Assembly: GCA_904063045.1 (NCBI GenBank)
Contig: CAJFCJ010000022.1
Location: 496,001-560,000 of the forward strand
Length of the DNA: 64,000 nt
Origin: Dimorphilus gyrociliatus
Taxonomy: Eukaryota; Animalia; Annelida
Direction: 5' to 3'
In this document: positions 9,539 to 64,000 of the stretch, in pieces
Layout of the letters: the number at the start of each line of letters is the position of its first letter
Position numbering within the stretch: the stretch's first letter is position 1
The notes under the pieces: generated by a model
Told to the model about the DNA's origin: nothing
Seen by the model: the letters and a program-made list of their open reading frames with translations, nothing else
The model's database searches: none
Position numbers and translations under genes: made by a program

Positions 9539-10753
9539 TTAATAGTTCAAGTCCTTTGTCTCTTGTAGTTGATAGGATGTTGATATTGTTTGTCGACTAA
9601 AGGATATGAGCGACATTCGTTTTTTGACTCCTCTAAACATTGTTTGTAATTCCTTACGAAATGCCCTTTCCGCTAGGCAATAGAGAATAAAATTAAAGCT
9701 AAAGTTAATTGATTGTAACAAATTCGCTATCTCAAGGAGTTTTTGAGGAAGTTGTAAATTTGTTACAATAATTTCGCCATTATAAGAATTCTCCTTTTGA
9801 GATTCGTAGTTTCGCCATATCATCTTCTCAATTGCTTCAAATTTGATCAATTCGCTTGGAAATACAAAGAAAAATTGCATAATTATTAAAATCACTAATA
9901 TTCTAGCGATCTTAACGCCATCTTTTGTCACTGAATTTTGGAGGTAAGTACTCCTTTTGTTATGCGCTCTCCACAGGCAAATCATCAGGTTAATATTACA
10001 GAATATTAACAATAAGTAAGGTGTAAAGATAACTAGTAAGGGCCACACCCACTGATGATAGATTTCGAACGCCCTAAAAAAGCTGGAGCCAATGAAACGC
10101 TGTCTCGGCTGATAGAGAGTTTTTGATCCGAATTTGCACGGAACAGTTTGAACCCTTAAGAATTCGGGTATCGTGACCAAAATACAAACAAGAAGTAATA
10201 TGACAAATACAATAAGCGACTTCTTTATGGTTAGATATCTTTTGAAGTGAAGAGGCCATATGATCATTAGATTCCTTTCAACCGCCATCTTAACCGTTAG
10301 CCAAGTGCTTAGAACAAGGAAAAAGTTTAAGCTCGTTACCCCGTATACTCGAAATTCCGATGACATTTTAAAATAATCTGTTGATGCGTTAGTATTTCGC
10401 CAGTAGAGAATTGAAAATGGAACGTTTAATAAGTTATAACATAGATCGGCAAAAGCTAAAAATAGAAATCCCAAACAAGCACATAATCTTAGTTCACCAA
10501 TTTTACTATTGTGTATACGTCGGCCAAAGATTATTAAATTTAAGATATTTCCAAAAATACCAAATATGGCTAATCCCAGCTGAACGTAAACCGGCCAAAA
10601 GAAGCCGTCATTCTTCAATATATTACATTTTTCACTACTCTTCATATTTCTTCTAGTTTCTTCAATAACTTCTTTATAGGTTCTATTAAAGTGTTTCCTA
10701 AGTATTCTCTTAACAAGTTCGATATCGAATGTTTGATTGTACGTAGACGCCAT
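9539..10753 (-). CDS. Class A GPCR, FMRFamide/sex-peptide-receptor-like orphan peptide receptor (404 aa, single coding exon)
   Basis: Seven hydrophobic segments with TM1 GNILN, TM2 LAFADL, TM3 AVERN, TM5 P, TM6 FFFVFP, TM7 NFSFNFILYC and helix 8 FRKEL. The track ORF starts at a TTG (10831); the first ATG is at 10753 (MASTYNQTF, N-glycosylation sequons), downstream of a splice acceptor at 10800. Confidence 0.95.
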   Translation of the reverse strand: MASTYNQTFDIELVKRILRKHFNRTYKEVIEETRRNMKSSEKCNILKNDGFFWPVYVQLGLAIFGIFGNILNLIIFGRRIHNSKIGELRLCACLGFLFLAFADLCYNLLNVPFSILYWRNTNASTDYFKMSSEFRVYGVTSLNFFLVLSTWLTVKMAVERNLMIIWPLHFKRYLTIKKSLIVFVILLLVCILVTIPEFLRVQTVPCKFGSKTLYQPRQRFIGSSFFRAFEIYHQWVWPLLVIFTPYLLLIFCNINLMICLWRAHNKRSTYLQNSVTKDGVKIARILVILIIMQFFFVFPSELIKFEAIEKMIWRNYESQKENSYNGEIIVTNLQLPQKLLEIANLLQSINFSFNFILYCLAERAFRKELQTMFRGVKKRMSLISFSRQTISTSYQLQETKDLNY

Positions 10754-12182
10754 TATCCCAGTAACGCTTTCCCCTTCGCCTTTTCGATTCCTTCTGTTGC
10801 TGTCTGGGCAAAGAAACGATAATGTATTCAAATGGTACGCTTTCTTTATATTTCATATTTAATTATCTCTCTTTTTGTCTCTCATTCATTCATTCAATCA
10901 ATCGTATATTCATTTAGATAAACAGTTCCCTCTCTCTATCCATGTATCTAAATCACTATCTATCAGACAACTTCCGACTAATTCCACCTACGTATAGCTA
11001 TTACACGGATTATCTACATATTATACAAAGAATAATTTACACCAATACACTAACCAATAATAAAGCAGTGTATTTCGAACATTTGCAAATGACTACTCGA
11101 TTAATTTTCCTAGGCTGAAATTGTTTCTTTTTTTAAACTTTTTTTCGCGTTAAAAGATGAAAGAATAATAGTTTTTAAATAGAGAACGTCTAGTATTACA
11201 TTCAGATTTGGTCTTTCTTTAAAAAGCTAAAGAAGATAGAAGATAAAAGGGAAGAAGAAAAATCCTAGAAGAAATAAAAGAAAGTTACAAAAACTATTAA
11301 ACGTTGGCAACTATACTCGGAAAAGTTAATTTCGTTATCATTCATTTTAGTAACGACCTTGGCATTTTTTACTGCAAATAGCATAGATTTAAAAATAAAC
11401 ATATTCTATTTCCTGCTTTAACCTAACTCTTTCTCCTCTCTACTACGTACACCTATTTCATGGAATTTTTTCTTTTTTTCCCCTCTCTTCTCTGATCAAT
11501 CAATCGTTATTTTCCACCTCCAACTCCATCATCTAACTACCCAATGATCCACCCACAAAAATTTACGCCTTTCAGTCACAATATTTATATTTAAGTGAAA
11601 AGAATGGAAAGGGCAAATGGACAAAAAAAGGAAGAGACGTGGGAGGAAAAGTGGCATTTTTTTTATGTGGAAAATTTAAATACTTTTCTTTTTTAGGTTT
11701 TTTTCATTTGATCAAATAAACTAGAAAAAATTGGAAAAGAAATCAACATTTTCGTATAACTACGACAAGGCCAATTAATTATGAAAAGGCCTGTAATTAT
11801 TCTTTTACTTCCGTACATGTTGAATCATTATCATATTTATAAGTGTTTGTGACAGATGTAGATCATATATATATATATATGTACATATGCTGTATATACG
11901 CATTTTGATAACAAAGTGTAACCTTCTCTTTTGACACTTGTTGACAAATAAGCCCTAAAACGGAGAAATCTCTTAAAATAAACAAAAAGGAAAGAGAAGA
12001 GTCAACTCTTTATCAGCAGAAAAAATAATAAACAATTATAATAAACAAATTTTGACAAGAGAGCAGTAGAGATAAAGAAGGGAGACAGAACGACAGCTAG
12101 AAAAGAAGAAAGAAAAGAAGAAGAGGAAGAAGAAGAAGAAGAGATAAAAATATATGAACAAATAAGTTAAAATAAATAAAGG

Positions 12183-13817
12183 ATGGATTTGAAAGTAACA
12201 AAAGTGGTTGGTATTTTAATTTATGACCTCAATAATTAATAATTGAGTAAAAATACATATTTTTGTATAGTTTATTTATTGGGCGATAATACTATTATTA
12301 TTAGAAAATGATTTACTAAGGGGATATACATCGGTCTATCCTTCTGAAGTAAGCGAAAGGTTTGTAATTGTATAAAATGTACAATGAAAAACTTGATGTA
12401 TTTATTCCGCGTTTTATTTAAGTTAAAACTTTAGAGCTTTTCTAATTCTATTAAAAAATTATATTAAAGTAAATTTATTGAGATAGAAACGGCTGTGTTC
12501 TCTTTTAAACATTTCTTACAAATTTCATTTGGTTTGGAAATAATAGAAAAAATAGAAATTGCTTAGAATACAATTTTGAGAAGATGAGTAATTAATTGTA
12601 TTACTATTATTTGTTAATGTTTGAATCCGTGAACAAAAGTATTCTAGTGATTGACTCTTTAATAAATTACATATCTATATTCGAGTACAAATGATAGTTT
12701 TGTTGTTGTTGTTGTTGTTGTTATTGTTAATGATGGATAAAGAGTTTATTGAGTGCAAAAAAATAGAAATTTGAATGTATGGGTATGCGTGCATGTGGGT
12801 TGAATGAATGTATGAATGCAAGTATGTCGATGTATGTATGTACGTAGATACGTACGCTGTAGTTTAAAATAGTGTATGAATGAATAATAAAGAGTAAATA
12901 AGTGAATGAGGTTAATTTATAAGACCAATATCCTTCCTTCTCCCTTTTACTATTAGAATTGATAAACAAGGTAGCAATAAAAGAATAATGAAGATAATAA
13001 TTGATATATGAAAAGAACATCTATTTTTGGTTAGTTACCAATGGGATTAGTTAAATTATAATAGAGAAATATATCTATTAAAGTATAAATAAACCATAAT
13101 TAGCATACAATAGACATAAATATATATATTTATATATATACTGTATATAAGCATACAGTACAGTAATACTTTTGAAAGAATTTTATTATTATTAACGTTA
13201 TTATTATACTATTTACATTTATAATTATTACTATAATTATAATTATAGAAGTAATTCGCCTGCTATCGCACATTTCTCACATTCGTCATGCTGCAGGGAT
13301 ATTTCTAAATGTTGCAGTATAAGAGCTCTAGTAAGTATTATTTTGGGAAAAGTCCTGTATATAAATTAGAATTGATTGATGGATAAAAGTTTCTATATAT
13401 ACTAATTTATTAGTATAGCATATTCAATGTTAAAATTCAAAAAGGCTGACGCAGTGTTGGATGATAAATAAATGTTGTTTTACATTCTAGGAATCGGCCA
13501 AGAAACTTTGCTGTACTCCGAAAATCTACAATACGTGCTGTAACCGATTCAATTCAGTTTGTAAACTTATTTTATTTGTTTATTTGATTGAAACGAGGGA
13601 ATTTTCGATTTTTCTCCTATAGGAAAATCACAGCAATATTTGCTGTAAGCTTATTAGAAGAGAGAAAAAAAAGAATTCTTCCAATTACAAAATTTTCCTC
13701 AGAAGTCTCGATAGAATTGAAAAAAATCCTCCCACATCAGATGGTATCTGCTCTAATATTTGTATTTTATATATTCATAGACTTTCTGCTAATATATGCG
13801 TTGAAGACAATTGTTAA
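12183..13817 (+). CDS. Uncharacterised small Cys-doublet protein (about 141 aa, 5 exons; not in ORF track)
   Basis: Exons 12183-12210, 12305-12359, 13249-13330, 13491-13556, 13623-13817 join in frame via GT-AG introns. ATG is in an AxxATGG context. Five in-frame Cys-Cys doublets fall in three separate exons. The 3' exon structure and two donor choices are ambiguous. Confidence 0.62.
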
Positions 13818-14198
13818 TAAGACAACTTGTACTCGAAATGAAAGAAACAAACAAACAAAATGAATTTATGATAAACAAATACAAATTTATAGAAAAGTAA
13901 TATTTTCACTTATTGCCTAATCGTTTCCGTTCCACATCATTTAAGATTATATTATCAATTATAAATGACTACAGTCCCTTTTCTCTCTCAAGAGATTTCT
14001 CCCGCCTCTTTTTGTTAAGCTGTCGTAATATTTCTCTTTAGCAGTTAAAGAGGTTAAAGTTTAATTCGTTAAGTCGTAAAATATAAAATAACATACACAC
14101 AAACCCTACAAACACGAATAGAGAGATATGTATAAATAAAAATGTAGAATATATACTGTATATATGTACAATCTACTGAACATGTCGGATATACTATA

Positions 14199-14201
<3 letters not shown>

Positions 14202-14235
<34 letters not shown>
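14202..14235. repeat. (TA)17 microsatellite
   Basis: Direct reading. Confidence 0.95.
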
Positions 14236-14239
<4 letters not shown>

Positions 14240-17107
14240 TACAGCAGATCTATGTATAATACTGTTTACAATAAGAAATTAATGGTAATGAATCTGTACA
14301 AGATATACAACAAAACCCTCTTCAAACATTTCTTCAATATTAGATATTATATGTATATATTATCAATTCTTAATTTAATGTAATAAGTAACACAAATGCG
14401 TATTATGTAATTGAGATTAGAACAATGTGATTTAGACATATAGATAAGGATAAAGAGGGGGAAAGAGAGAGAGAGGGAGAGAGAGGGAAAGGGAGGGAGA
14501 CAGAGAATGAAAGTCAGGAATAAAGAAAAAAAATTTAAGAACCCGTAAACCAGATGTTTTCTTTTTTTCTATAATAAATTCAATGTGTATAATTAACAAG
14601 AAACGGAACATTATTTTGTTGTTGTTATTGTTTTTATTAAAAAAATACGCATTAGGAAAAGAGAGAGAGAGAGAGAGAAGAGAAATCAAAAATTAAAATG
14701 CATACATACACGCACTTACACATACACACTGTTAATTAGGAAATAAATTAAATACAAAGCGTAATAGATCGCCGGAATAAAACCTAACAAACCTATTTAT
14801 AATTCATCTCTATCTATAAAGAGCAATTGTTTAATAAAGTTTGTCAAATAGATTTAAAAAACAATGAAAAGAAAAGATAAAAAACTGAAAAAAAGAGATT
14901 TACCTGACAAACTACAAACAAGAAGAAATTTTGAACAGCAGTTATTATACTTACAAAGATATCAGAGTTTACTTTTCAATGAACTCTGTGTGTTTTCTTT
15001 TTTCTAGTTGTATATTGCTAGTTTCCAAATGTAAAAAATTATTTATACTGTCTGCTTATTTTAGCCTCTAGATAAGATATATCAACGGCAGATGCGTAGG
15101 GGGCGCTTAAGTCTAATAAAAATTCATAATTTCGTCTCTAAATATCAAATATATAATACACGGAATAAATTAATTATCATAATAATAAAGGGCAATACAA
15201 TATAAATATATATAATAAATATATTGCATATACAGTAGTCGCTATATTGGTGTATAGTACACATCAAATATATACAGTATATATCTATATATATATATAT
15301 ACATATATGTAAACGGCAGCTCCACTACAAATGCATTATGATGTGTAGTTTATCAACTTGAATATACAGTATAATTGGATATTTTATATACTCTGGATAA
15401 AAGTTGAAACGTCACGATAAAGAAAACAATCTGTACGTTTCAATCTTATGTGTTTAAGTATTGTTGTCCTATATAATTCAAAATTGAGAAATAATAATTA
15501 ACAATACATCACATTTGTTCAAACAGACATGTAATGTAAACAAGTGGGGTTTTTTTTTCCAATAATAAGTAAGATTGATTCTTTTTCTTCTATCTTTTTC
15601 AACCCTTTACTGAGTTTATGTAATCACAAATCTTTGTATAAATCAATTATTGTCAGAAAAAAAAGACTCTTTAATTAAACAGATGTATAAGCTTTCTTTA
15701 TCATATGAAATCCTTTAAGTATTCTCTTGAATGTTAAACTCTTTCATTAATGCTCTAATATGTCCACTGAATTGCAAAATGATGACAAATATTAACTTTT
15801 GAAAGGTCAGTCAACCATTGATCTACTAGCCGGCATTATAAGGTGGTCGAAAGACAAAGCAGAAAAGAAGAGGAGGAGGAGGAAGAAGAGAGTGAGACAA
15901 TCTTTGTGAAATGAAACGAAAAAAGATAGGAGATAGCTCGGTAATAATAATAGTAATGCTAGAATGAAGAAGATAAAAAGATACTCGAGTATATAAGATT
16001 AATCTCTTGTTATGTTTTGAAATGGGATATGTCTAATATATATATCTACATATATAAGTTTATACCGAATATAAGAAGTTTTTCGTTAACATAATCACTA
16101 GAAAGACCACTTACTATTCATTTGCTGAAGTAGGTCAGGATTTAATAAATTACAACATACATTTAAACCGTATAAACAATTAATAGAATAAGAATCTAAA
16201 TATCACAAAATGCAAAATAAAGGAAAAAGAGAAAAATGACAAAAGCCTATAGTTTAAATATTCATTCGTTACCTCTATAAATTGTTCTTGCTATTCCTTC
16301 TAACGACCTTTTACCGTCTGAATGTCTCTTTCTATAAGAGTATAATACTCTTATAATATATGTTTATGAATATTTGACTTTTTTTCCGTCTTTTCTCCTC
16401 TATCTTTGCTCTCTTCTTTTTATATTTCCTTCTCTACTTCGTTTCAACCATGCAGTATGTATTAATACTTTATATATATATATAGAGAGAGAGAGATAGA
16501 TAGATACATACATACATACATATATGTGAGAACTTTACACTATTCACTATGAAACAATAATTACCAATTGTTTAAAATGAAACAATATGGTTTGAAAACC
16601 AATATATGCGTATATTGTTATATCCATTGGTTTGTCCAATATATTGTTATACTATAAATTAGTATTTTGTAAATATTTTCACACAAGCAAAACTGAAAGA
16701 ATTAAAAAGTGAAAAAAGTTTACTATCTGTTAAAAAATTCCCTATTTCTTCTCTAAATTACACTTTTTCTACATTTATACTATACAAAGAAATATACGAT
16801 TATGTTATACTACCACTCGTAAATCAGATATTCATCTATTCAGCTATTTACTCAATAGATTATTAAACGGTGAGGTAGACAATGTTTTTATCATTTAACT
16901 ACTTTATTATTACTAATTTATAATAGATAAAGAAATATTTTATTACGATCAACCGGAAGTAATTGTGAATGGAAACAACTTCCCCATAAATACAAAAAAA
17001 AAATAGCTGAATAAAAATTTACAACTGTGACGTGGAAAGGAAAAACGTTTCCATGGCGATGATAGCGTAAATGATAAACGCATCCCAAAGCAGTAAAGAT
17101 AAATGGT

Positions 17108-17108
<1 letters not shown>

Positions 17109-17138
<30 letters not shown>
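17109..17138. repeat. (AG)15 microsatellite
   Basis: Direct reading. Confidence 0.95.
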
Positions 17139-17141
<3 letters not shown>

Positions 17142-18488
17142 AAGAGAGTGAAAAGTAGCAAAAAAGTAAAAAGAAAAGCAAAGGCGACTTCTTAAAAGTA
17201 GTAAATGGATTAAGATATTAAACTATAGTTTTTGGGAAAGTCTCCTTCTCAATAGAATAAAAACAAGAAATTTGATATAAATTCTATAGAATAAAAATAT
17301 ATCTCGTTAACAAAACTTTCAACAAACTTCTCTTGGCTATTGTTTGTTTGTTTTTACAACATTGCCGACTATGTCAATATTAAAGGAATTAAAAGGAAAT
17401 TGCTCTTCACTCTTCCCCTCATGATCTAACTAAACTAACCTATATTCCAGCTTTTCTCTTGTTCTTAGTGGAATACTAAATTTATTTCACTGCTTTAACT
17501 TATTAATTGCTGTGATGTTTTTAGCTTTCTTCTATTATCTGCCCACGACCACTTCTCCCTTCTGTCTTTCTTTCATTCCTCAAAGAAATGCTGTATAACT
17601 CTTCAGTGCAATTTTTCAATTATTAACTTTTCCTTTATTACCGTTAAATGTATGCTAATAATTCATAAAGTATATATTTTTGGCCTATTCCCTTACAACT
17701 TATTCCTAGAAAAGGTAATGAGATTAATTTTTGCATTTCCGATTAAATACTCAAGTAGATGGCGTTAGTGTTTAGTCTTATGTAAGTTTGTTCGTGGAAT
17801 CTTATTATAAGAAATTTATTTATAGTAAAGAAAGGGTTTGATCGAGGGAGGGAGGGATGGATGGATGGATGGAAAGAAGGAGGAAGAGCGATAGAGGAGA
17901 GGTAGGAGGACTGAGCCAGAGACAGAGAGAGAGAGAGAGAGCGAAGAGGGAATAACTAAGGGGGGTTTGATTTAATTTGTTTCTAGGCGTTGATAAATTG
18001 TCAGAAATTATTAGCGCTCCTTTAGCATTAAGGTGAAAGATACGATTGGTAGATTGTGTTAGTTTGGTAAAAATCGGACAAATAATTCTAAACGATGATA
18101 AAAATAGGAAAATCTACTAGCAATTGAATAATCTTCTTAAACTTCACAGAAAAAAGTTTGCATGCTATAGAAAAAATTGATTATTCTCTTTTCCTATTTT
18201 AATGGAGAAATACACAAATAAGGGAGAATTATGAAGAGAAAGAGAGAGAGAGAGAGAGAAAAACATAAACACAAAAATGCGCTTGTTTTGAATAAGAATA
18301 AATAATAAGGAACGATTACTTCTTCTTAAATGGTTTTTAGTATGATAAAATTGAATGTATTAAATTATTTTATCCGATCTACGGTTGACTAATTAATCAC
18401 TACTTCAAGCTATAAAAAATATTACAAAAAATGTCTCTAATATTCTTTCTTTCGTCTCAAATTAATCTAATTTTAATTATTATCCGAA

Positions 18489-21400
18489 TCAAGGACCCAT
18501 AGCTTTGACAATATCAGCTTCATCCAAAATCTCTTGGGCAGTGTAACGATTTAGTTCGTCGTAGTTTGGGTCGAGTGTAAACCACATAGCAACGGCACAC
18601 CGACGTCCTTTCGTTACAGGTAAGACGCCGTGATAATGACCAGCATTAAAGCCGACAAGTCTTCCACACTGCGGTTCAAGTAAGGCTTGCGTGGTAAAAT
18701 TTTGATTAGCGAACAAAAATTTGCCTCCTTCGAAATCGCCATTGAGATACAAGATGGCGCTGTATGAAAAAAAATATACATTTTAGAAACAATGAGACAA
18801 CTGTTTACAATAAAGAGGTGTGTAGACTAGAGAATTTGTATCATGTACAGTATATACAGTATATATATATACTAATATAATATATATATATCTATATCTA
18901 TATATAGTACACAACATACTCTTATATAGTATAATTGTATAAAATTAGTAAATGGTAAAATTCGTTTTATAAAGGATGCCAAGTAGGAAATGTGCTGACC
19001 AATCAACCGATAAATATATCCTTTATTAACTTATAACGCCGAGTATTATTTAGTTAGAGTTTTCAAGCACAGGAGGAATTATTTGCAAAAATCACGCATG
19101 CGTATTCAAAAGAAGCTGATCCGTCAACTGATCAAAGAAATTTGAGCGGTAGCTTTTATGAACTGTTCACGCTTCTACATTGAGAACTCTATCGCTTCCG
19201 AAAACCACTTCGCGCAATAATCAGATTACACTCAAGACGGAAAAACCCTACCTATAATCCCTTTGAACGTAAGCCGGCCTTGTTCTAATACAAGTCTTAT
19301 CTTTCTGCATAACGCAATTATCGGCGTGTATAGGGTGACTTAAATCTTGGCGGTTATTTTGTGCACCTGGATAGTATTAGATAATAATCATTTTCATTCA
19401 AAAGAAAAAGATGTTATGTCTAAACAATTCCAACCTTCAATAGCCTCTCTACAAACCAAATGCGTATAATCAAAATAAATTTGTTTCTTTCCGTTTGTAA
19501 AGTAACTTTCAGCTATTTGTCGGCTTCTTTCACTCTTTCGAAGGTAAGTTGTAACCGCCTCCTTCAACGCCTTTTTCTCTTTCACCAACTGTTTAAGTAA
19601 AACAAAAAAAAAAAATACTTGTATATATCAATGAAATTATTATAACTCAAATAAATGACATTTCAAGAGCAGATAGACAATTTTTCAAATGCAATTAATT
19701 TGCCTCGCGGGAGCATCAACTCCAGTATAAAACCATAAAAACAAGAAAACTAATCTCATCCCATATTCTTGTTGCTAAGCAACAAATGTTTTTGTAACTA
19801 GAAACAAAAACAGATTAGCCAAAGAGGAAGAAGAATTTTACAGATAAAATATGATTAAGAGAGGAAAATATTCTAAAATTTTTACATTATTACTATTTGT
19901 TATTATTGTTATTGCCATAGTTTAATTTTACTTTCTTTCCCTTTCCCTCTCTATCTGTCTGTCTGTCTCTCTCTCTCTCTCTCGCTCTCTCCCTCCCTCC
20001 CTCCCTTTTTCCTTTCACCTTCCCAAATCTATTAGTAAAGTAAACATTTTAGAGACATTGTACAATTGGGGGTTTATCCCGCTATTATTAATTGTTTTGG
20101 GCCCAGAAATCCGATATGGGAAGAAGGGATAAGGGAAAAAAAGGGGTCATAATTAAAAAAAAAATACATTAAGCTTATAGTAATCTTGACGTTGATCATA
20201 CTTACGCAATTAAGGTTGCTATTTTGTTTATATCTTTTTTTTGGCCTCTTTTTTATGTTTTTTATTGTCAACAGTTTGGGCGAAGATTAAAGATCTATTC
20301 TATTGAAGGTTGTAATGTTATATTAGTAGAGGAATAGGAGGAGAAACGTTGAAATGTTGATAAATAGAAGACAGTTTGAAATTTCTCAACATAAAATGAA
20401 AATAAAATATTAAACAAGTTAGAATGTTAGTTTCTTTATAAAGAAAGTATAAACCAGTTCGTTAGATCAAAGTAGAAACATAATTAACTCACTTCCGCCG
20501 CCCTTTTAGGGGTCATTCCAGCGAAAAATTCACTATTTGTATGTGGAGATGTTCGCGACTCCATTCCTGGATAACCGTCACCAACGAGCGAGCCGGTCTA
20601 AAAGAAACGCCATACAATAAGGTCTATTGTTCAATTTGTATAAGAAATATACGAAAAATCTTACGTCTGCTAAATCAATTAAAAGTTTACAAGTATCTTC
20701 ATCTAGCACATTATCAACAACGAATCTATCGGTTCCGTTCAAGTCGTCTTCCCTCTTAAATACTTCCAAGTGGTCTTCTTGAACAATTTTCAAGAAATTT
20801 TCCTTCTCCTCCATATTCTCCATTTTCCGAACGGAATTAAATAGCGAAAGAGAGTTTTGAATTGTTTGATGTATTGAACGGCGATTGAAAGAAAATTCCA
20901 TTTTGATAAAGTACCTATTGCTATTTTGAATAGGGGATACTCTGTGACCTAATTTTTGAACTATCATTCGTCCGCAATTAGGCTTAACAAGACCTTCAAC
21001 TTCGCTTTCCGATTCGAGGAACAGTGAAGCTCTACAAAGTAAAAAATCAATCTAATCAATTCTTGTACTTATTCATTGAATTTCACTATATATAGATATA
21101 TTGGAAATTGATATTGGCTAATATCCACTACACGAATAAAAGAAAAGATAGAGGAAAGATTAGGGTTAAGAAGAAATAAAGAATGGTTCTGGTTAGGGTT
21201 GAAATGTTCAATTAGGTCAATTTAATTCAATAAAATTGGTCTTTTGGGTAAAATGGAATTGACTTTTAACCATAAAAAAAAAGGTTTAGGTCAGGAAAGG
21301 AAGTATCTTATTAAATGGAATAGACTAAAAGCTAAACGTACGTGATATCGGGAGAATCTGCACAACTGCTTTCAGGCGAATCGCAATATTCCAGATCTGG

Positions 21401-49958: not shown

Positions 49959-52900
49959 ATGGGACATCTAATATCTTCTATTCTTTATATTTTACTCTAT
50001 TCATCAAGCGTTCGATCTTTTGGGCCTGGAAATAATTTTCCATCGGGTAATGGAAATGGCGGAAACAACTGGGGTAATGGAAATGGACACAGTGATGGAA
50101 GCGAAGGAACTGGAGGAACAGGAGGAACTGGAGGATATGGAGCAACTGGAGCAAGTTCAGGTACTTCGGGGACTGTAGGATCTGGAGTTTATTTTCCAAC
50201 AAACACATGGAAGAAGCTATATTATCACCAATTGCCTCAGTTTCTAGACTGTGAGCTAATCGTCAAACATGTTGACGTTGACAAATGGAAAAGTGTATTA
50301 ATATAAGCGAATTAACTTTATTCCTCTTTTTTAATTCCTTTTCTTTTCATTTTTTCTATAGATTCATATAAACTCTAGGCAAGTTTTTAATCAACCCTCA
50401 TCCACTTGTATTCCTTTTAGCTTCGGAAATGTTTCGGGTAAATTGGTTACTCTTTTCATCCATTATGAATCTATGTACTGGGATAATAATTGTAAGAATT
50501 TACCAACTTCTATGGCTGAATTGAATGCTACAGGAGTTGTATTCCAAGCATTGGAAAGCCATAGTAAGTACATTTCAGTAATTTTTCTTTTTAGATTCTT
50601 ATATCGCGTGATAATGAATAAAAATTACATACATAACAGAAAGGCATATCGAAGACCTATTACTTTCAAAGAATTTTCAGATTCCAGTTGGCTACACCGT
50701 TAGTCAAGTAGAGCCTTTCTTCCATAGCGATAGTCATTCGGTTATTGTTACGGAAAATTCTGAATTGCCGTTCTTATACTCAGAAAGAAACTTACTTATG
50801 GATTATGGCAATCAAAAGTTGGTATTTATTTAAAGTAGGATTGTAGAGTCAAAAAATATCAATATAAAAATATAGCAGTAGATTCTATCGTTCATTTCTT
50901 TTACAGTTTTGTGGCATCCGCCGTACTCGATAGGAACCAAGCGACTTGTGTTCAATCCTATCCGTACAATGTCTTTAATCTGCCGAAAAGGGCTTGGATA
51001 CATACTGTTAAAATATGCCTACAGGCAACTGGTATATAAGAATAATTAACATTGTAGTTAGCACGCTCTTGATTCAATTTAACAAATACTCTTTACCTTT
51101 CCAGGAGGCTCTGCTAAAGTAGGAACAAACTCTTTCGCCACCATGTGTACAGAAGCGCCATCTGTATTGCCGTGTTTATATTTCAATTGTCAGAAACTAA
51201 AGAGAGGAAGCTACATACAAGCTTCGTTTAGTATCGGAGTGAAAATATGCGAAATAGAAATATTTTCTTATAATTTGGCTTACGGTTCAAAAATAATACT
51301 ATCAGATGATACAATGCTCAATATGATACATTCAAAATCGTTAATAGCTGACTTAAATACAGAAGATGAAGTAAGCTCGGCCTTAAAACTGAAATCATGC
51401 CATAAAGTAGAAATAGTATTCAATAGAAGAGTTTCAATACAATCTTTCGCCGCTAGAATTTCTTGTAAATATACTTTATTCATATATTTATTCCTTTATT
51501 GTTTCTTATACTTTACTTAGGTAAAAGTCAGGAATGCGAGAAAATTATTCAAATCAAGCCTACTATTGAAAATGATGAAAACAACTTTTGTGAAGAGTTT
51601 AGAATGGAAAAGATGTCAATGAATAATTTTTTTTGGGCTAGATTCCATTGTGGAGGGCAATCGAATTTCGTTAGAATAAAGAATATAATAGGACTAATTC
51701 ATATTGATGAAGTTGAAGTGTTTGGTGTAGACGGTAACGAGACAATTAATAACTGTAATCAGTCCAGTAGCTTGAATGGCAGAATGAATTGTAAACAATT
51801 CGCCCTTTGGAAAGTGGCAAATAATAGCAAAGTTTCACTTAATCAAACGTACAATCCATTCTCGTTGATAGACGATCGTTTTAATACATGCGTTCCGTTT
51901 AAGTTCCTGTATTATTACGAATGGAAAAGTGAATTCTATTCAAAACCATTCACAATCACCTTTACGAAAATCGTTTTCGAGTTGGTTGAATTAAAAAGGG
52001 ATCCCATACTTGTTGTGATCTATAAGAATAAAGATAAAACCTTTAGTCAGACAATACCCATAAAGGCAACTGGAATTGATATAACCTCGGGAAAGAGTGT
52101 TTTATATTGGACAACTTCACTCTCTTTTCCCCCGTTAGAGGTGTATCTTAGAGCGACAAGAATCGACTACGGTTCGTTATGCGAAATTATACTTGAAGGA
52201 GAAGGGCATCAACCATCTTTAAAACAGTTAAATTGGAAAGAAAAGGTTGAATTTAAAAATCGAATAACTTGCGAGGATTCCGATGTTCTAAACGATTCAA
52301 ACTGGAACCCTCAATTTTCTAATTGTATGAGTTTTCAATATGCAAATCAAGAGTATCCTTGGATAATTTTTGATCTTGAAAGTCCGTATGTAGTTAAGAA
52401 ATTACTGATTTCTTATTTGAAAGCAATCTCATCAATTGACATTTCGCTTCTTAACACATCGAGAGGAGTTGAATACTTGGATAAGAGGAAATTTCCCTAC
52501 AATTCTCAAAGAATTATTTGCGTAACGAAACTTTCCTTAAAACATTTTAGTGATGAAATATTTTGCAGAGAAAATGCAGTTGGATCTTTATTGACTATAT
52601 CAACTTTTAATCGTTTAGATTCTTTACAGATTTGCGAAGTAAAAATATTTGGTGAAGAAACCACTTTTATAGAGCACGAAGTCCTTTTGAGGACAAATGG
52701 AACAATTAGAAATGGAGATCGTATAGCCTTGGATACATTTTCAAATATAACAGCAATTTCAATTAGACCTAATAGGAATATCTCGGAAAAGCTAATAATA
52801 CACCTATCGAATAATCAAATAATTGATAAAGACCAATTGCATTTAAGTGATGGATCGTTAACTATCGATTTTAAGGAGTTAGAAATAGGAGATGAAAATA

Positions 52901-53408
52901 ATAATGTCTTATTACCAATATCTCCTATGAATCATGTGAGATATCTACACATTTTTGGTAACTTTACCGAAACTATACTACTAAGAATATTCGGATTATT
53001 CGAAAGAGGAAGTAATAAAATCTATATACCATTGCAAATATTCTTAATTAAGTTAAAATTAGACATACATACATACAAACAGACGAATAAATTCTCTTTT
53101 TCCCTTTTTATTCAGACCTGTTTCGTCGAATAGCAATCAATTTACAACTAGCAAATGGCCAAGTTAAAGATGAACACGATACTTTTCAAGAATGCGTTAA
53201 ATTCTGCCACGACAACAAAGATTGTTGGGCATTCTCTTGGAATAGACACGATAAATGCGTCTGCTCATTTAAACCGGAAACTGGGGGAACAGTGAGAGAT
53301 TTTTACCAGTATGATAATAGCAGCAGTTTGGAACTAATTAGACAAAATGGCTCGGAAATTTATTCTTTGTGCTTAACAAAGAAACAATTGAATATTATCC
53401 ATTGTTGA
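49959..53408 (+). CDS. Secreted multi-domain F5/8 type C / fucolectin-like protein with C-terminal PAN/apple-like domain (paralog 1, about 994 aa, 7 exons)
   Basis: Exons 49959-50294, 50362-50563, 50640-50817, 50907-51031, 51105-51464, 51521-53011, 53116-53408 (phases 0,1,2,1,1,1). Signal peptide, Gly-rich segment, repeated module motifs (LDRNQATC, IDDRFNTC, PWIIFDL, ICEIEIFS, IDEVEVFG, LCEIILEG, ICEVKIFG), then ECVKFCHDNKDCWAFSW..KC. Exon 2-3 boundaries are the least certain. Confidence 0.82.
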
Positions 53409-55901: not shown

Positions 55902-56963
55902 TTAAATTCCCCTTGAAGTTACTGTGCAGTTTTGTGTTTGGCCGTGTGAACCATTCGAAAATTTTCTTGTACTTTCAGGACTTAGGATTTTTATAAGAGC
56001 TAATCTAAATGCTTTACCAGAGGCACAATACAAGTAAAAGTTCAATATATAATTAGAATAGAATAGTATTTGAAAACTATTCCAAAGCAAACCAGTATTA
56101 TCTGGACCAATGCGGGCTTGAATGTTATTAAACTCTCTCGAGAAAACGAGCAATGGAGCAGTCGTTACGAGAAATGCAAAGCTGACTGTTAGAAGCATGA
56201 TGGTTGTTGACTTGATCTTATTCTGATCTTTATTTATAGAACCTTGCGTTAGATTCTGTTGAGTTCTCCTCGATCTTAACATTAAGGAAAGGATGATCAA
56301 GTTTCCCGTCAGGATAAAGGCAAAAGGGATAAAACTGCCGAATATTTGATCGAAAAGTTCTCTAGCTTCACTCAATCCTTTATTCCAGCCGTCGTGGCAC
56401 ACTCTTATTGTTTTAGTCTTACTTTCCAGTTTCATACCGAATAAAACATATGAATTAGAAGCGAATGTAACCAAAAGAACAATTATTATAGAAATCCACT
56501 CGACCCGATGCGTAATCCAAGCTTTAACCTTTAGTGGAGATATTAAACTCAATGCTCTCATACCCGTAACGAGAACTAGGAGCCATGCTGATGAGTGAGT
56601 CATCCAAAATTCTAGAAATGGTTGCAATTTGCAAAGACCGGTATTTACATTTCTTATTTCTTTTTCGCTTACAGATGTAGTGAAAACTCTTAGAACGCCA
56701 ACCAACAATACAAGTGAATCAACAATCGCTAAAGCTACTAAAACTCTGGATGATGGCACCTTTCGAAAAGACTTTGATCTAAGAACAATAGTAGCCAAAA
56801 GATTTCCACCAATACCAATTAGAAACACAATTGGGCACAATATAAGATACATAGCCTGAATTTTCCATGCTGTTGATTGATAGTTGATTTGAACAGGCGG
56901 GGTTCCGTAAAAATTATTTTTCGAGTTATCAACCAAACTTGAGTTGTTTCCAGACAGAGGCAT
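55902..56963 (-). CDS. Class A GPCR, FMRFamide/TRH-receptor-like orphan peptide receptor (353 aa, single coding exon)
   Basis: TM1 GIGGNLL, TM2 LAIVD, TM3 CKL..SAWLLVLVTGMRA..PL, ECL2 Cys, TM5 FIPF..N, TM6 FAFLVTTAP, TM7 SNYILNFYLYC, helix 8 GKAFR. The track ORF's first 48 aa are intronic (polypyrimidine tract and acceptor at 56980); the likely start is MPLSGNNSS at 56963. Confidence 0.95.
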   Translation of the reverse strand: MPLSGNNSSLVDNSKNNFYGTPPVQINYQSTAWKIQAMYLILCPIVFLIGIGGNLLATIVLRSKSFRKVPSSRVLVALAIVDSLVLLVGVLRVFTTSVSEKEIRNVNTGLCKLQPFLEFWMTHSSAWLLVLVTGMRALSLISPLKVKAWITHRVEWISIIIVLLVTFASNSYVLFGMKLESKTKTIRVCHDGWNKGLSEARELFDQIFGSFIPFAFILTGNLIILSLMLRSRRTQQNLTQGSINKDQNKIKSTTIMLLTVSFAFLVTTAPLLVFSREFNNIQARIGPDNTGLLWNSFQILFYSNYILNFYLYCASGKAFRLALIKILSPESTRKFSNGSHGQTQNCTVTSRGI

Positions 56964-57760
56964 TTTACGTGAATGACCGCTGTTTGAGGACAATATAATA
57001 AAGATAATAATAAAAAAAAAAAGAAAAAAAAAGCGGTTATGGCGTCTGTAAGTGATTGGCAAAACGACCCATTTAGTACATACATATTGTATGTTTGTTT
57101 GGATCATTAACGTAGTGTTTTTATTGGTTTCTGAAAGCTCACGACTGATTGAAAATGAATGATTGTACTGTGCGAATATTTATTATTGATTAAAAAATGC
57201 ATTCATAATTGATTTTTGCACTCGGGTATGGCCATTAAGATAACTGATATCTTATTGACGGCGCAATTTGACCTAATATCCCTTTGTAAGAGAAAAGAGT
57301 AAGAGGGAGAGAGAGAGAGAGAGAGAAGTAGCCTGAAATAGTTGATAATGAGCAAAGGGAAAAGATGGGGAAAGAAAGCGAGAAAAAATACGAAATTGAT
57401 TTAGGAGCTTATGTACTCACATTTTCTCTCCTTTCTCTTTTCCTTCCTTCCTTTCCTCCTTGATTTTAAGGTTTATTGGATAAATAAAACGACCAAACTA
57501 TATCGCTTTTTCTTTATCAAATCCAAAGTTTTGTCATTCTCATCCTATTAGAAGCTTTCAATAATTCCCTATAAAACCATACTCTTTCTTTATAAGAGAG
57601 ATGCAAATATATTAGTTAAGGTACCCCCACTTAAACTTTTGAATTATAACGCTTTAAACATTTTCTTTTTCATTATTTATAGAAGATAATTACATTTTCA
57701 CAAAACATTCTCTCTCGTAGGATACTCCCACTCATCCACTCTCCAGCTTTGTTTCTTCCA

Positions 57761-61048: not shown

Positions 61049-64000
61049 ATGAACGCGAAAAATCTCTCCCTCGTTATTTTCTTCGTTCAAATGTATTCCT
61101 CTCACCATTTTTTAATGTCGACAACTACAATGAAATTACATCAAATTCCTCATATTTACGATTTAAACGTTCAAGTTCCGTCATCTCAAGTTGACCTGTG
61201 GAAAGAGGTTTTTGTTTTTTATTTTATGTTAATTGAATAAAAGAAGGAGATAAAAACTTTCCTTTATTAGATTCATATAAATACAAGTGGTATTGTGGTA
61301 ATTGATGAAGTAAACCCAGCAGAGTTTCCTTTGTATACGAATAAGATTGTGATTGTGACAAAATATTTGGGAGGAAGTCAATTAACGTTCATTGAAGATA
61401 CTAGAATTCATGCAAAAGCTTTAGTTATTACCATACCAAGTTAATATTTTCAATATTATGATGATATTCGTAAATTTTAGACTAGTCCTACAATGAAATC
61501 TTTTACTTTCTTTACAGTTCCTAGTCTATTTTATGATCCAATCTATGAATTGATTCCTGTTGCTTTTGCTAATCCATCTTCTATAAATTTTACTTCAGAG
61601 GTAAAGATGATAATGTTAAGTTTAACGCAAGATTTACCTCTAGACGGAGGATCGAAGAATTTTATGCAGACTATAATGAATGGGTAAGAAAAATGAAAGA
61701 ATATTTCAGAACAACTTCATTCTACTAATAATGATAATTTTCATTGATAATTAGAGGAGCTTTTAATCAAATAATTGATGGAAATTATTCAACTTGTTCT
61801 ACACCTTTGCAGTACATTTCAGTTATTTTGCCAAGTACTAAAATGTGGGTAGGAAAGGTAACAGTCTGTACAACGGAACAAAGTAAATTACATATAGACT
61901 CATAGCTATGTATCTTATTTATTGAATAATAATTGAAATATTTATGAAAACTAGATGTTCACTTGAATGTTTCATTCTATTCACCCAATGGACCAAGTTG
62001 TAATTATACTGGAACTTCACCTGCACATGTTGGATGCCAGATATTTTCGTGTTATATCCTTAGGTATAACTCTCATTACACGAAACTCTATGTAAACTCA
62101 TTGAATCACTATGTGCACTTATGTGAACTGGAAGTAACAATGCTTAATATGGCTATAGGAACAACAGTTACGGCCAAGATAAATGGTTCGACAGTATCAA
62201 TACCGTATTATAGAGATCTAAATATTATAGTGGAGAAGTGTATAACAACTAATTTTAAACTTGGTCGCGATGTTTTCGTTCAAATTCTAATGACGAGAAT
62301 CGATTGTAAGCGTTTCTTTTTATTTATTAATTTAATTATATATTCACTGGTTTATTCATTTAATTATTTTTCGCTTTAAAGGTTCTGGAAGTCTTTGTTC
62401 TGGACATTTTCGGTTTAGGGCAATTATGGATAAGGGGGAAAAAAACTACTGTCCTTCACTTACAACCAAACCAAATAGTCTCGAATGGATTGTTTGGCCG
62501 TGTTTCGGAATTACTTCTCACATTATTTTAGTTAACGATTTAACTACTACACGCATAATTAGTATAGAGATTTATGGATCGGAGGTATCTACTTCTACAG
62601 CTCTACTTAACCTGCTACCTTCGACAGATTGCTCTATTATGGGTGCAAATTCAAATATAATATGCGGACAATTCTCCTATTGGACTAGTAAATCAGAAGA
62701 TAGTGCGCCAAACAATTACAATCCATTCCTAATATTGGACGATAGTCATACTACTTGTATAAGTAGCGAGATATTTAAGAATTTCTCGTGGATTTCCATA
62801 CTTCCCGGTCAATACGATCTGGAGAAGCTTGTTATAATCACTAATTCAACACCTCCTCTACTAACGATACCAGTCAATTTCACATTTTGCGATGACAATG
62901 GACTAGTTGAAGTTATTACAGAAAATATTAAATTTGGCGAAGGGTTATACACCTGTACATTTAATCTATCATTGTCCATTAAGCCGTCAAGTTTAAATAT
63001 AACAATAGACGAAGGATATTATGGAGAATTTTGCGAGTTTCAACTCTATGGATCAAAGATATCCTCGTCTAAAAATGCAATATCAGTATCGAATTTTCAA
63101 ATGTCTCTTAGCAATTCTTATAATTGTACAAGCCCTGGAGAAAAGCTGGAAGATTTTATCTGGCTTCCCTCTAGTGAATATTGTTATTCTATATACGGTA
63201 GAGTTAATGGTAAACCGTGGGTTAGAGTAAAATTTACTTATAGCTACCTAATAGAAACTGTACTAATATCGCATATGGACAACATATCGAGTGTAGATAT
63301 TGGTTTGGTGGGAACATGGAGAGGTGTTGAGTATTTAACGGAAAATGAATATCCTTTCAAAAGTCAGAGGAGGATCTGCGCTACTGAAATCAATTTGAAT
63401 AGGTTCAGTGAAAGGATTAACTGTCTTGAGAACGCTTATGGAAATTATTTATATGTTGGGTCGTTAAACTATAAAGCCACAATTAGAATATGCGAGTTAG
63501 GCTTTTTTGGCTATAGATTCGATTATCTTGAGAATGAACATCTATTACGAATGGTTGATAAAGTGTCGACCAGCTCATTAATACATTTTGATGGAAATTC
63601 AAATGTTACTTCCCTGTCAATTTCACCAATGTTTAATGGAGAAGGTGAATTGATTATTTACGGCCTACCTAGGAATTATCCTATTCAATTCCTAAACGAG
63701 TCTAACATTCTGTTGCGTTTAAATGAACCATTCGTAAAGAATAACGATATACTTTATGACGTTCAGCAAAGTTCAATAGAAAGTTTACTTTTCGAAGGAG
63801 ATTTTACAGCAGAGCTATTTGTAAGAATTTTTGGAATTTTTAAAAGAGGAGGTTGACATTGATACATATATATATATTTAAATTCGATATTCTTTTACTT
63901 TATTTATCGTTTCAGTCTACTCTAAACCTATTGTGAACGATGCTAAACTCTATCAAGGAACCTCAAAACTATTTAACACTTTTCAATTGTGCAGTAGCGA
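61049..64000 (+). CDS. Secreted multi-domain F5/8 type C / fucolectin-like protein (paralog 2), 3'-truncated by window end
   Basis: Exons 61049-61207, 61271-61439, 61518-61683, 61755-61882, 61955-62305, 62382-63851, 63916->64000. Intron phases (0,1,2,1,1,1) are the same as paralog 1. Shared motifs: HQ(L/I)P..WK, exon-2 start IHIN, IDGNYSTC, YNPF.I(L/I)DD..TC, PW, RGVEYL, ICE..FG, RIFG.F.RG. Confidence 0.85.

Follow-up and report, generated by a model that had tools for sequence, protein, structure and literature searches.

In the annelid Dimorphilus gyrociliatus, two short exon-like blocks within a 64,000-nucleotide (nt) stretch of genomic DNA (the window; positions 496,001–560,000 of contig CAJFCJ010000022.1 in a 77.9-Mb assembly) are candidates for the core of a genuine gene on the plus strand that is spliced, codes for protein and is restricted to its lineage, a reading to which we give an even chance. 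An earlier note had drawn at this place (12183–13817) a five-exon gene for a small protein with five Cys-Cys (CC) pairs, and its numbering of exons and introns is kept here. Intrinsic sequence statistics lend support to a hidden spliced coding unit at exons 3 and 4, possibly including exon 5, but not to the five-exon model of 140 residues as a whole. The candidate core would comprise an exon at 13249–13330 with a GTAAGT donor, a 160-nt intron and an exon at 13491–13556 (or 13491–13560), continued by a 62- or 66-nt intron with a very good acceptor and a last exon starting at 13623; the paired cysteines would be the functional residues of the putative protein.

Exon 3 (13249–13330, plus strand; 82 nt) is the best-supported piece by translation, guanine-plus-cytosine (GC) content and codon score. 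It encodes CC-x5-CC and has a GC fraction of 0.40 with three CpG dinucleotides, compared with 0.15 in the preceding 150 nt and 0.25 in intron 3 (13331–13490, plus strand; 160 nt), which begins with a GTAAGT donor and ends in a pyrimidine-rich acceptor closing with TTCTAG, with a branch-like CTGAC at 13446–13450, 41 nt ahead of the acceptor. Exon 4 (13491–13556, plus strand; 66 nt, or 70 nt with the donor at 13561), supported by translation and GC content, encodes CC-x7-CC at a GC fraction of 0.41 with four CpG dinucleotides, and intron 4 has a GC fraction of 0.26. Both GC-rich blocks stop exactly at AG and GT. Donor classes were judged by how far GT-hexamers are enriched where coding open stretches of this genome end, and GTAAG was the most enriched class (21 seen, 4.3 expected). 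A single frame is open in exon 3, the one that contains the CC pairs, and the splice joins it into the frame of the two CC pairs of exon 4. Raw log-odds per codon were 0.19 in exon 3 and 0.24 in exon 4, compared with −0.16 ± 0.15 for chance open stretches. The intron lengths of 160 nt and 62 or 66 nt are compatible with the species, whose introns have a reported median of 66 bp and in which trans-splicing was reported to be absent (PMC7854359). The peptide encoded by exons 3 and 4 has about 50 residues, is hydrophilic and basic (7 Lys/Arg, 2 Asp/Glu) and carries eight Cys arranged as CC-x5-CC, x11 and CC-x7-CC, each exon supplying one CC...CC unit.

The Cys-Cys codon pairs (TGYTGY) form a dense cluster, with six hexamers within 358 bp where 0.32 are expected per 400 bp. 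All five in-frame CC pairs of the drawn gene were recovered, at 13289, 13310, 13509, 13536 and 13641, and the sixth hexamer, at 13473, lies inside the proposed intron 3. The window mean was 0.36 per 400 bp, and the sole other dense spot was a (TTG)n microsatellite at 12700. When 264 kb was scanned on both strands (528 kb, microsatellites removed), the CC locus was the only cluster of at least five hexamers, and one further cluster of four was found, lacking frame coherence. Repeats and microsatellites were excluded as the source of the hexamers, as 13250–13820 contains no tandem repeat; one lone 15-nt direct pair in this segment brackets the CC pairs of 13536 and 13641. The region was present in single copy in a search of the worm's own genome and is therefore not a repeat or transposon.

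An automatic pattern scan asked for an open, GC-rich exon bounded by AG and followed by a GTAAG donor, then an AT-rich intron of 45–200 nt with a pyrimidine-rich acceptor, and behind it a continuation that is again open and rich in GC. Six or seven sites were found in 528 kb of strand sequence, compared with 0.2–0.3 in third-order Markov simulations, and four of the five other sites were clear coding exons (von Willebrand A-like, EGF-like).

Several results weigh against a coding core. About 10 of the 14 bits of the raw codon score were due to the Cys codons themselves, and the codon test was therefore redone without them; exons 3 and 4 together then scored 0.029 per codon, at the 92nd percentile of chance stretches and the 49th of real coding sequence, approximately the coding median, a value that speaks for the core. 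The thresholds of the pattern scan were chosen after the CC locus had been seen, and looser thresholds gave real-to-simulated counts of 17:4 and 32:15. With the excess of sites weighed against this post hoc choice, exons 3 and 4 are likely to be a genuine spliced pair. At a TGYTGY density of 0.0008 per base and strand, a Poisson calculation (our arithmetic) predicts about one or two equally dense clusters genome-wide (78 Mb), and because the scan took in the entire genome, the cluster by itself is not decisive. Exons 3 and 4 lack an in-frame ATG and thus require a coding exon upstream, and none of the phase-compatible ATG segments in the 2.4 kb upstream has a consensus-class donor. Exon 5 has a GC fraction of 0.29, equal to that of the flanks, and an ambiguous Cys-blind score of −0.069 per codon (77th percentile of chance, 20th of coding). 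Finally, no homologue, orthologue or transcript was seen in the collections searched, which consist of other species' records, and no paralogue in the worm's own genome.

The searches were run exon by exon. Pfam returned only noise for every exon piece at E-values up to 10, and three pieces compared by sequence with PDB had no meaningful match. The large representative-protein search accepted queries of at least 30 residues and thus covered exon 5, exons 3 and 4 being too short; for the 64 residues of exon 5 there was no word-sharing protein candidate, and full HMMER gave 0 matches among 1.84 billion representative proteins. A 57-residue open stretch containing exon 3 yielded no candidates among proteins of 31–100 residues. 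Exons 3, 4 and 5 and the locus DNA, compared with the worm's own genome in six frames, matched the locus itself only, and two scans of metagenome contigs for exact DNA patterns returned 0 matches. Rfam assigned no family within 10800–18600, where only sub-threshold microRNA noise was returned, and a literature search on cysteine-doublet mini-proteins found nothing relevant. Coding on the minus strand was excluded, as no open frame of at least 25 residues lies opposite exons 3 and 4.

The alternative that survives best, which we consider somewhat unlikely, is chance: CC hexamers, open frames and splice-like motifs would coincide in a non-coding spacer in which the reader was free to pick GT and AG sites. 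Besides the one or two clusters expected in the genome, this explanation draws on the ease of in-frame joins here (55 alternative first exons), on two of the four donors of the model belonging to a class not used above background, on the missing homologues and paralogues and on the sixth TGYTGY falling in an "intron". It also draws on a 91-codon open frame that runs across exon 5 in a different register and is clearly non-coding (Cys-blind score −0.188 per codon, 48th percentile of chance, 4th of coding), because of which long open frames at this locus are not evidence in themselves. However, two GC-rich blocks with sharp bounds, a perfect GTAAGT donor and a pair of good acceptors are found at the very place of the cluster. 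Coding-like codon usage, with Cys codons ignored, is confined to the blocks, the open frame just beyond the boundaries of exon 3 scoring −0.70 and −0.24 per codon, and the joint probability of these features at a random hexamer cluster, by our rough multiplication, is well below 1 in 1000. The earlier note had called the arrangement very unlikely by chance; this does not hold for the cluster alone and does hold for the cluster taken together with what exons 3 and 4 offer in open frames, blocks rich in GC and good splice signals, a combination that makes chance unlikely.

Less likely than chance is that the exons are real and yield no working CC protein, being exons of a long non-coding RNA, an untranslated part of another transcript or the remnant of a decaying Cys-rich gene. 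The supported exons have no start codon and no convincing first exon, exon 5 resembles the flanks in composition, and it has no relatives among the representative proteins searched. In addition, the hexamers at 13473, 13509, 13536 and 13641 are in one genomic frame, parted only by TAGs at 13488 and 13620, and because four hexamers are common to this frame a decayed single-exon gene is possible. Both TAGs, however, are the last three bases of good acceptors with pyrimidine tracts, so that introns fit better than mutated stops, and the stretches that separate the TAG-bounded blocks have a Cys-blind score like that of non-coding DNA (−0.29 per codon), which does not indicate a single long ancestral open reading frame (ORF). 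A non-coding exon pair would also not be expected to keep CC codon pairs in its sole open, splice-continuous frame.

If the coding core is followed downstream, intron 4 (13557–13622, plus strand) measures 66 nt from a GTTTGT donor at 13557 or 62 nt from a GTAAAC donor at 13561. Its acceptor, TTTTTCTCCTATAG, is very good, with a pyrimidine at 11 of 12 positions, and the in-frame TAG at 13620–13622 is this acceptor itself. GTAAAC belongs to the enriched GTAAA class (21 seen, 10.8 expected) and GTTTGT to an unenriched class. With the donor at 13557, exon 5 (13623–13817, plus strand; drawn from its translation) is in frame and adds the fifth CC pair and four more Cys, its 64-codon frame being in phase through the 66-nt intron only. 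With the donor at 13561, a TGA is formed across the junction, exon 5 becomes 3′ untranslated region and the product is a 78-residue form. Because the two donors overlap (GTTTGTAAAC), both may be in use. It is unlikely that the fifth CC pair and four Cys would lie in phase through a 66-nt intron were exon 5 untranslated. The C-terminus may thus end just after exon 4 with four CC pairs, or continue to five CC pairs and four Cys, the two endings being about equally probable; the Cys count is even in both (8 or 14). A palindrome with a 9-bp stem (ACAGCAA / TTGCTGT) at 13628–13648 is centered just ahead of the fifth CC pair, whose TGCTGT hexamer forms one arm of the hairpin, and was flagged as terminator-like on the minus strand.

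Upstream of the core, exon 1 (12183–12210, plus strand; an ATG and 25 nt, followed by a GTATTT donor) was drawn from its translation and is unsupported, and exon 2 (12305–12359, plus strand), drawn from translation and GC content, is mildly GC-richer (0.36). Since 55 other ATG-to-GT segments in the 2.4 kb upstream are phase-compatible with exon 3, the choice of exons 1 and 2 is arbitrary. An in-frame join of exon 2 to exon 3 requires the GTTTGT donor at 12360 and an 889-nt, microsatellite-filled intron, and hexamers of the GTTTG class show no excess at exon ends (8 seen, 10.2 expected). A GTAAGC at 12349, 11 nt upstream of this donor, is in an enriched class, and its use gives a TAA at 13252–13254. 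The competing donors at 12349 and 13561 thus alter the product as had been anticipated, the first through this stop in exon 3 and the second through the TGA of the 78-residue form. Exons 1 and 2 together (26 codons) had a Cys-blind score of 0.077 per codon, at the 96th percentile of chance and the 62nd of real coding sequence.

The absence of a signal peptide, also claimed earlier, is correct for exons 1 and 2 as drawn; those exons are themselves unsupported, and an alternative start at 12691 is signal-peptide-like. Because the claim rests on these exons, a choice between a cytosolic and a secreted protein is not possible. The alternative start belongs to a 27-codon ORF (12691–12774, plus strand) made of an ATG and a (TTG)n microsatellite, which encodes Met-Ile-Val and then a leucine run (Leu10) and is phase-compatible with exon 3 via weak donors at 12744 and 12753 (GTGCAA). 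This ORF is probably a microsatellite by-product.

Very unlikely is the five-exon model exactly as drawn, a 140-residue cytosolic protein whose five CC pairs would be S-palmitoylation, metal-binding or sperm structural sites: it depends on two GTTTGT donors of an unenriched class in place of better-class donors that break or shorten the frame (GTAAGC at 12349; GTAAAC at 13561, 4 nt downstream), an 889-nt intron in a genome with a median of 66 nt, first exons that are one among dozens of options and an exon 5 without a match in the protein collections searched. It is, however, open and in frame throughout: 12183–12209, 12307–12357, 13250–13330, 13491–13556 and 13623–13817 do encode the peptides written for them, ending in the stop TAA at 13815–13817. 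GTTTGT at 13557 also gives an intron of the species median length that phases the fifth CC pair and the 64-codon frame with its four Cys, and the codon score of exons 1 and 2 is mildly coding-like, over 26 codons only. A canonical GT-AG intron with a donor of a used class was found at intron 3 (GTAAGT) and not at introns 2 and 4 as drawn. The gene proposed by the earlier note is supported at exons 3 and 4 and unsupported at exons 1 and 2, with exon 5 ambiguous by GC content and codon score.

If the candidate core does belong to a real gene, our tentative first choice would be a peptide, secreted or structural, with disulfides stapling every exon-encoded CC...CC unit, because this is the usual fate of such Cys-rich small proteins. 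It would require a further signal-peptide exon; the Cys number is even (8 or 14), and one signal-like candidate exon (12691) has a weak donor. A multiply S-acylated cytosolic protein would be less probable, metal binding less probable again, and the rest falls to something else; with a cytosolic product, the palmitoylated, metal-binding and sperm structural options of the earlier note would all be conceivable. Considered on its own, a cytosolic, basic mini-protein built of exon-sized CC-x(5–7)-CC units, with four or five vicinal Cys pairs lipidated or metal-bound, is improbable.

The core was compared with known Cys-rich systems. Like taxonomically restricted small Cys-rich genes, it is small and multi-exon, with short introns, high Cys content and no family, and is easily missed by ORF tracks; it differs from them in that Cys occurs as adjacent pairs only. 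In the framework V ("CC-CC") conotoxins of the T superfamily of cone snails, two Cys pairs form two cross disulfides. Their CC-x(4–7)-CC spacing resembles that of exon 3 (x5) and exon 4 (x7), a likeness that serves as a lead only. These toxins come from a different phylum, whereas the CC locus has two or three units per chain and no identified signal or propeptide; there is no sequence similarity, and homology was not supported by any search run. Proteins with multiply S-acylated Cys clusters (the cysteine-string protein DNAJC5, GAP-43, CC motifs of the PI4KII-alpha type) similarly have adjacent Cys, basic flanks and a hydrophilic stretch, but the Cys pairs of the CC locus extend along about 50 residues and are not gathered into a single string. 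As a biochemical property with no defining sequence profile, S-acylation cannot be inferred from sequence.

Three specific identities were rejected, to the extent that profiles and motifs can decide. A cysteine-string protein (DNAJC5), which has a J domain and after it an unbroken string of more than 10 Cys, does not fit, as there is no DnaJ or other Pfam domain and the Cys pairs are 5–11 residues apart. Metallothioneins share the small size and the abundance of Cys (in the core, 10 Cys over about 45 model residues) and have hardly any aromatic residues, but the core has no C-x-C or C-x-x-C, Phe, Tyr and His are present in exons 3–5, and no Pfam match was obtained at E-values up to 10. A keratin-associated or sperm mitochondrial Cys-rich structural protein, the kind marked by CCxP or CCQP repeats and Keratin_B2-type profiles, was rejected because there was no Pfam match and no repeat beyond the one 15-nt pair.

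The window is AT-rich eukaryotic DNA (GC 26–38% in 2-kb steps), and the CC locus sits in a 7.6-kb spacer without long ORFs between two genes on the minus strand, a single-exon G-protein-coupled receptor (GPCR) gene (9539–10831; identified from its ORF and the Pfam match of a relative) and a prolyl 3-hydroxylase gene (3′ end at 18489; identified from ORFs). The nearest visible relative of the GPCR carries Pfam 7TM_GPCR_Srw and 7tm_1, and the best named match of the GPCR itself is from the annelid Capitella teleta (29% identity). Used to calibrate the searches, this GPCR returned a 76%-identical protein on two Logan contigs and distant annelid matches, not its own protein. An exact look-up of three long window ORFs found none in the protein collection searched, and neither GPCR product of the window was present there. 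The second GPCR gene lies at 55902–57107; both are single-exon, rhodopsin-type and on the minus strand.

The two Logan contigs (L025 and L026; runs SRR23372229 and SRR23372216) are from a related worm and carry the 76%-identical GPCR orthologue. L025 (3300 nt) follows the window colinearly from the GPCR to approximately 12180, where it ends in a GA repeat, short of exon 1; no conserved ATG was seen in L025 at exon 1, the alignment there being unreliable. An 85–97-nt block at 11323–11419 (L025:882–977) is 93% identical between the two worms, compared with 78% for the GPCR coding sequence and about 65% for the flanks. It lies about 570–670 nt upstream of the GPCR start, has no Rfam match and no convincing fold (z −1.55 and +0.18), and may be a conserved promoter or 5′ untranslated region element or a small upstream ORF (11265–11402, minus strand).

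Elsewhere in the window, two alike gene units on the plus strand (51143–53133 and 61963–63856), about 11 kb apart, each consist of an ORF of 125–138 residues followed by a long ORF (544 and 476 residues, respectively). The long ORFs have motifs in common, e.g., ...ICE(V/L)...FG... near the end, and the two units look like tandem paralogues.

The D. gyrociliatus genome was reported to span 73.8 Mb with 209 genes per Mb (PMC7854359). If the candidate core is a real gene, it would add another small, cysteine-rich, lineage-restricted gene to a genome noted for its compaction, with Cys in adjacent pairs only and one CC...CC unit per exon, a design without a matching family in the searches run. Should the cytosolic mini-protein of CC units prove true, it would represent a new repeat family without relatives in 1.8 billion representative proteins. 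For the coding core itself, the finding would be a modest addition to the catalogue of orphan genes and of annotation misses.

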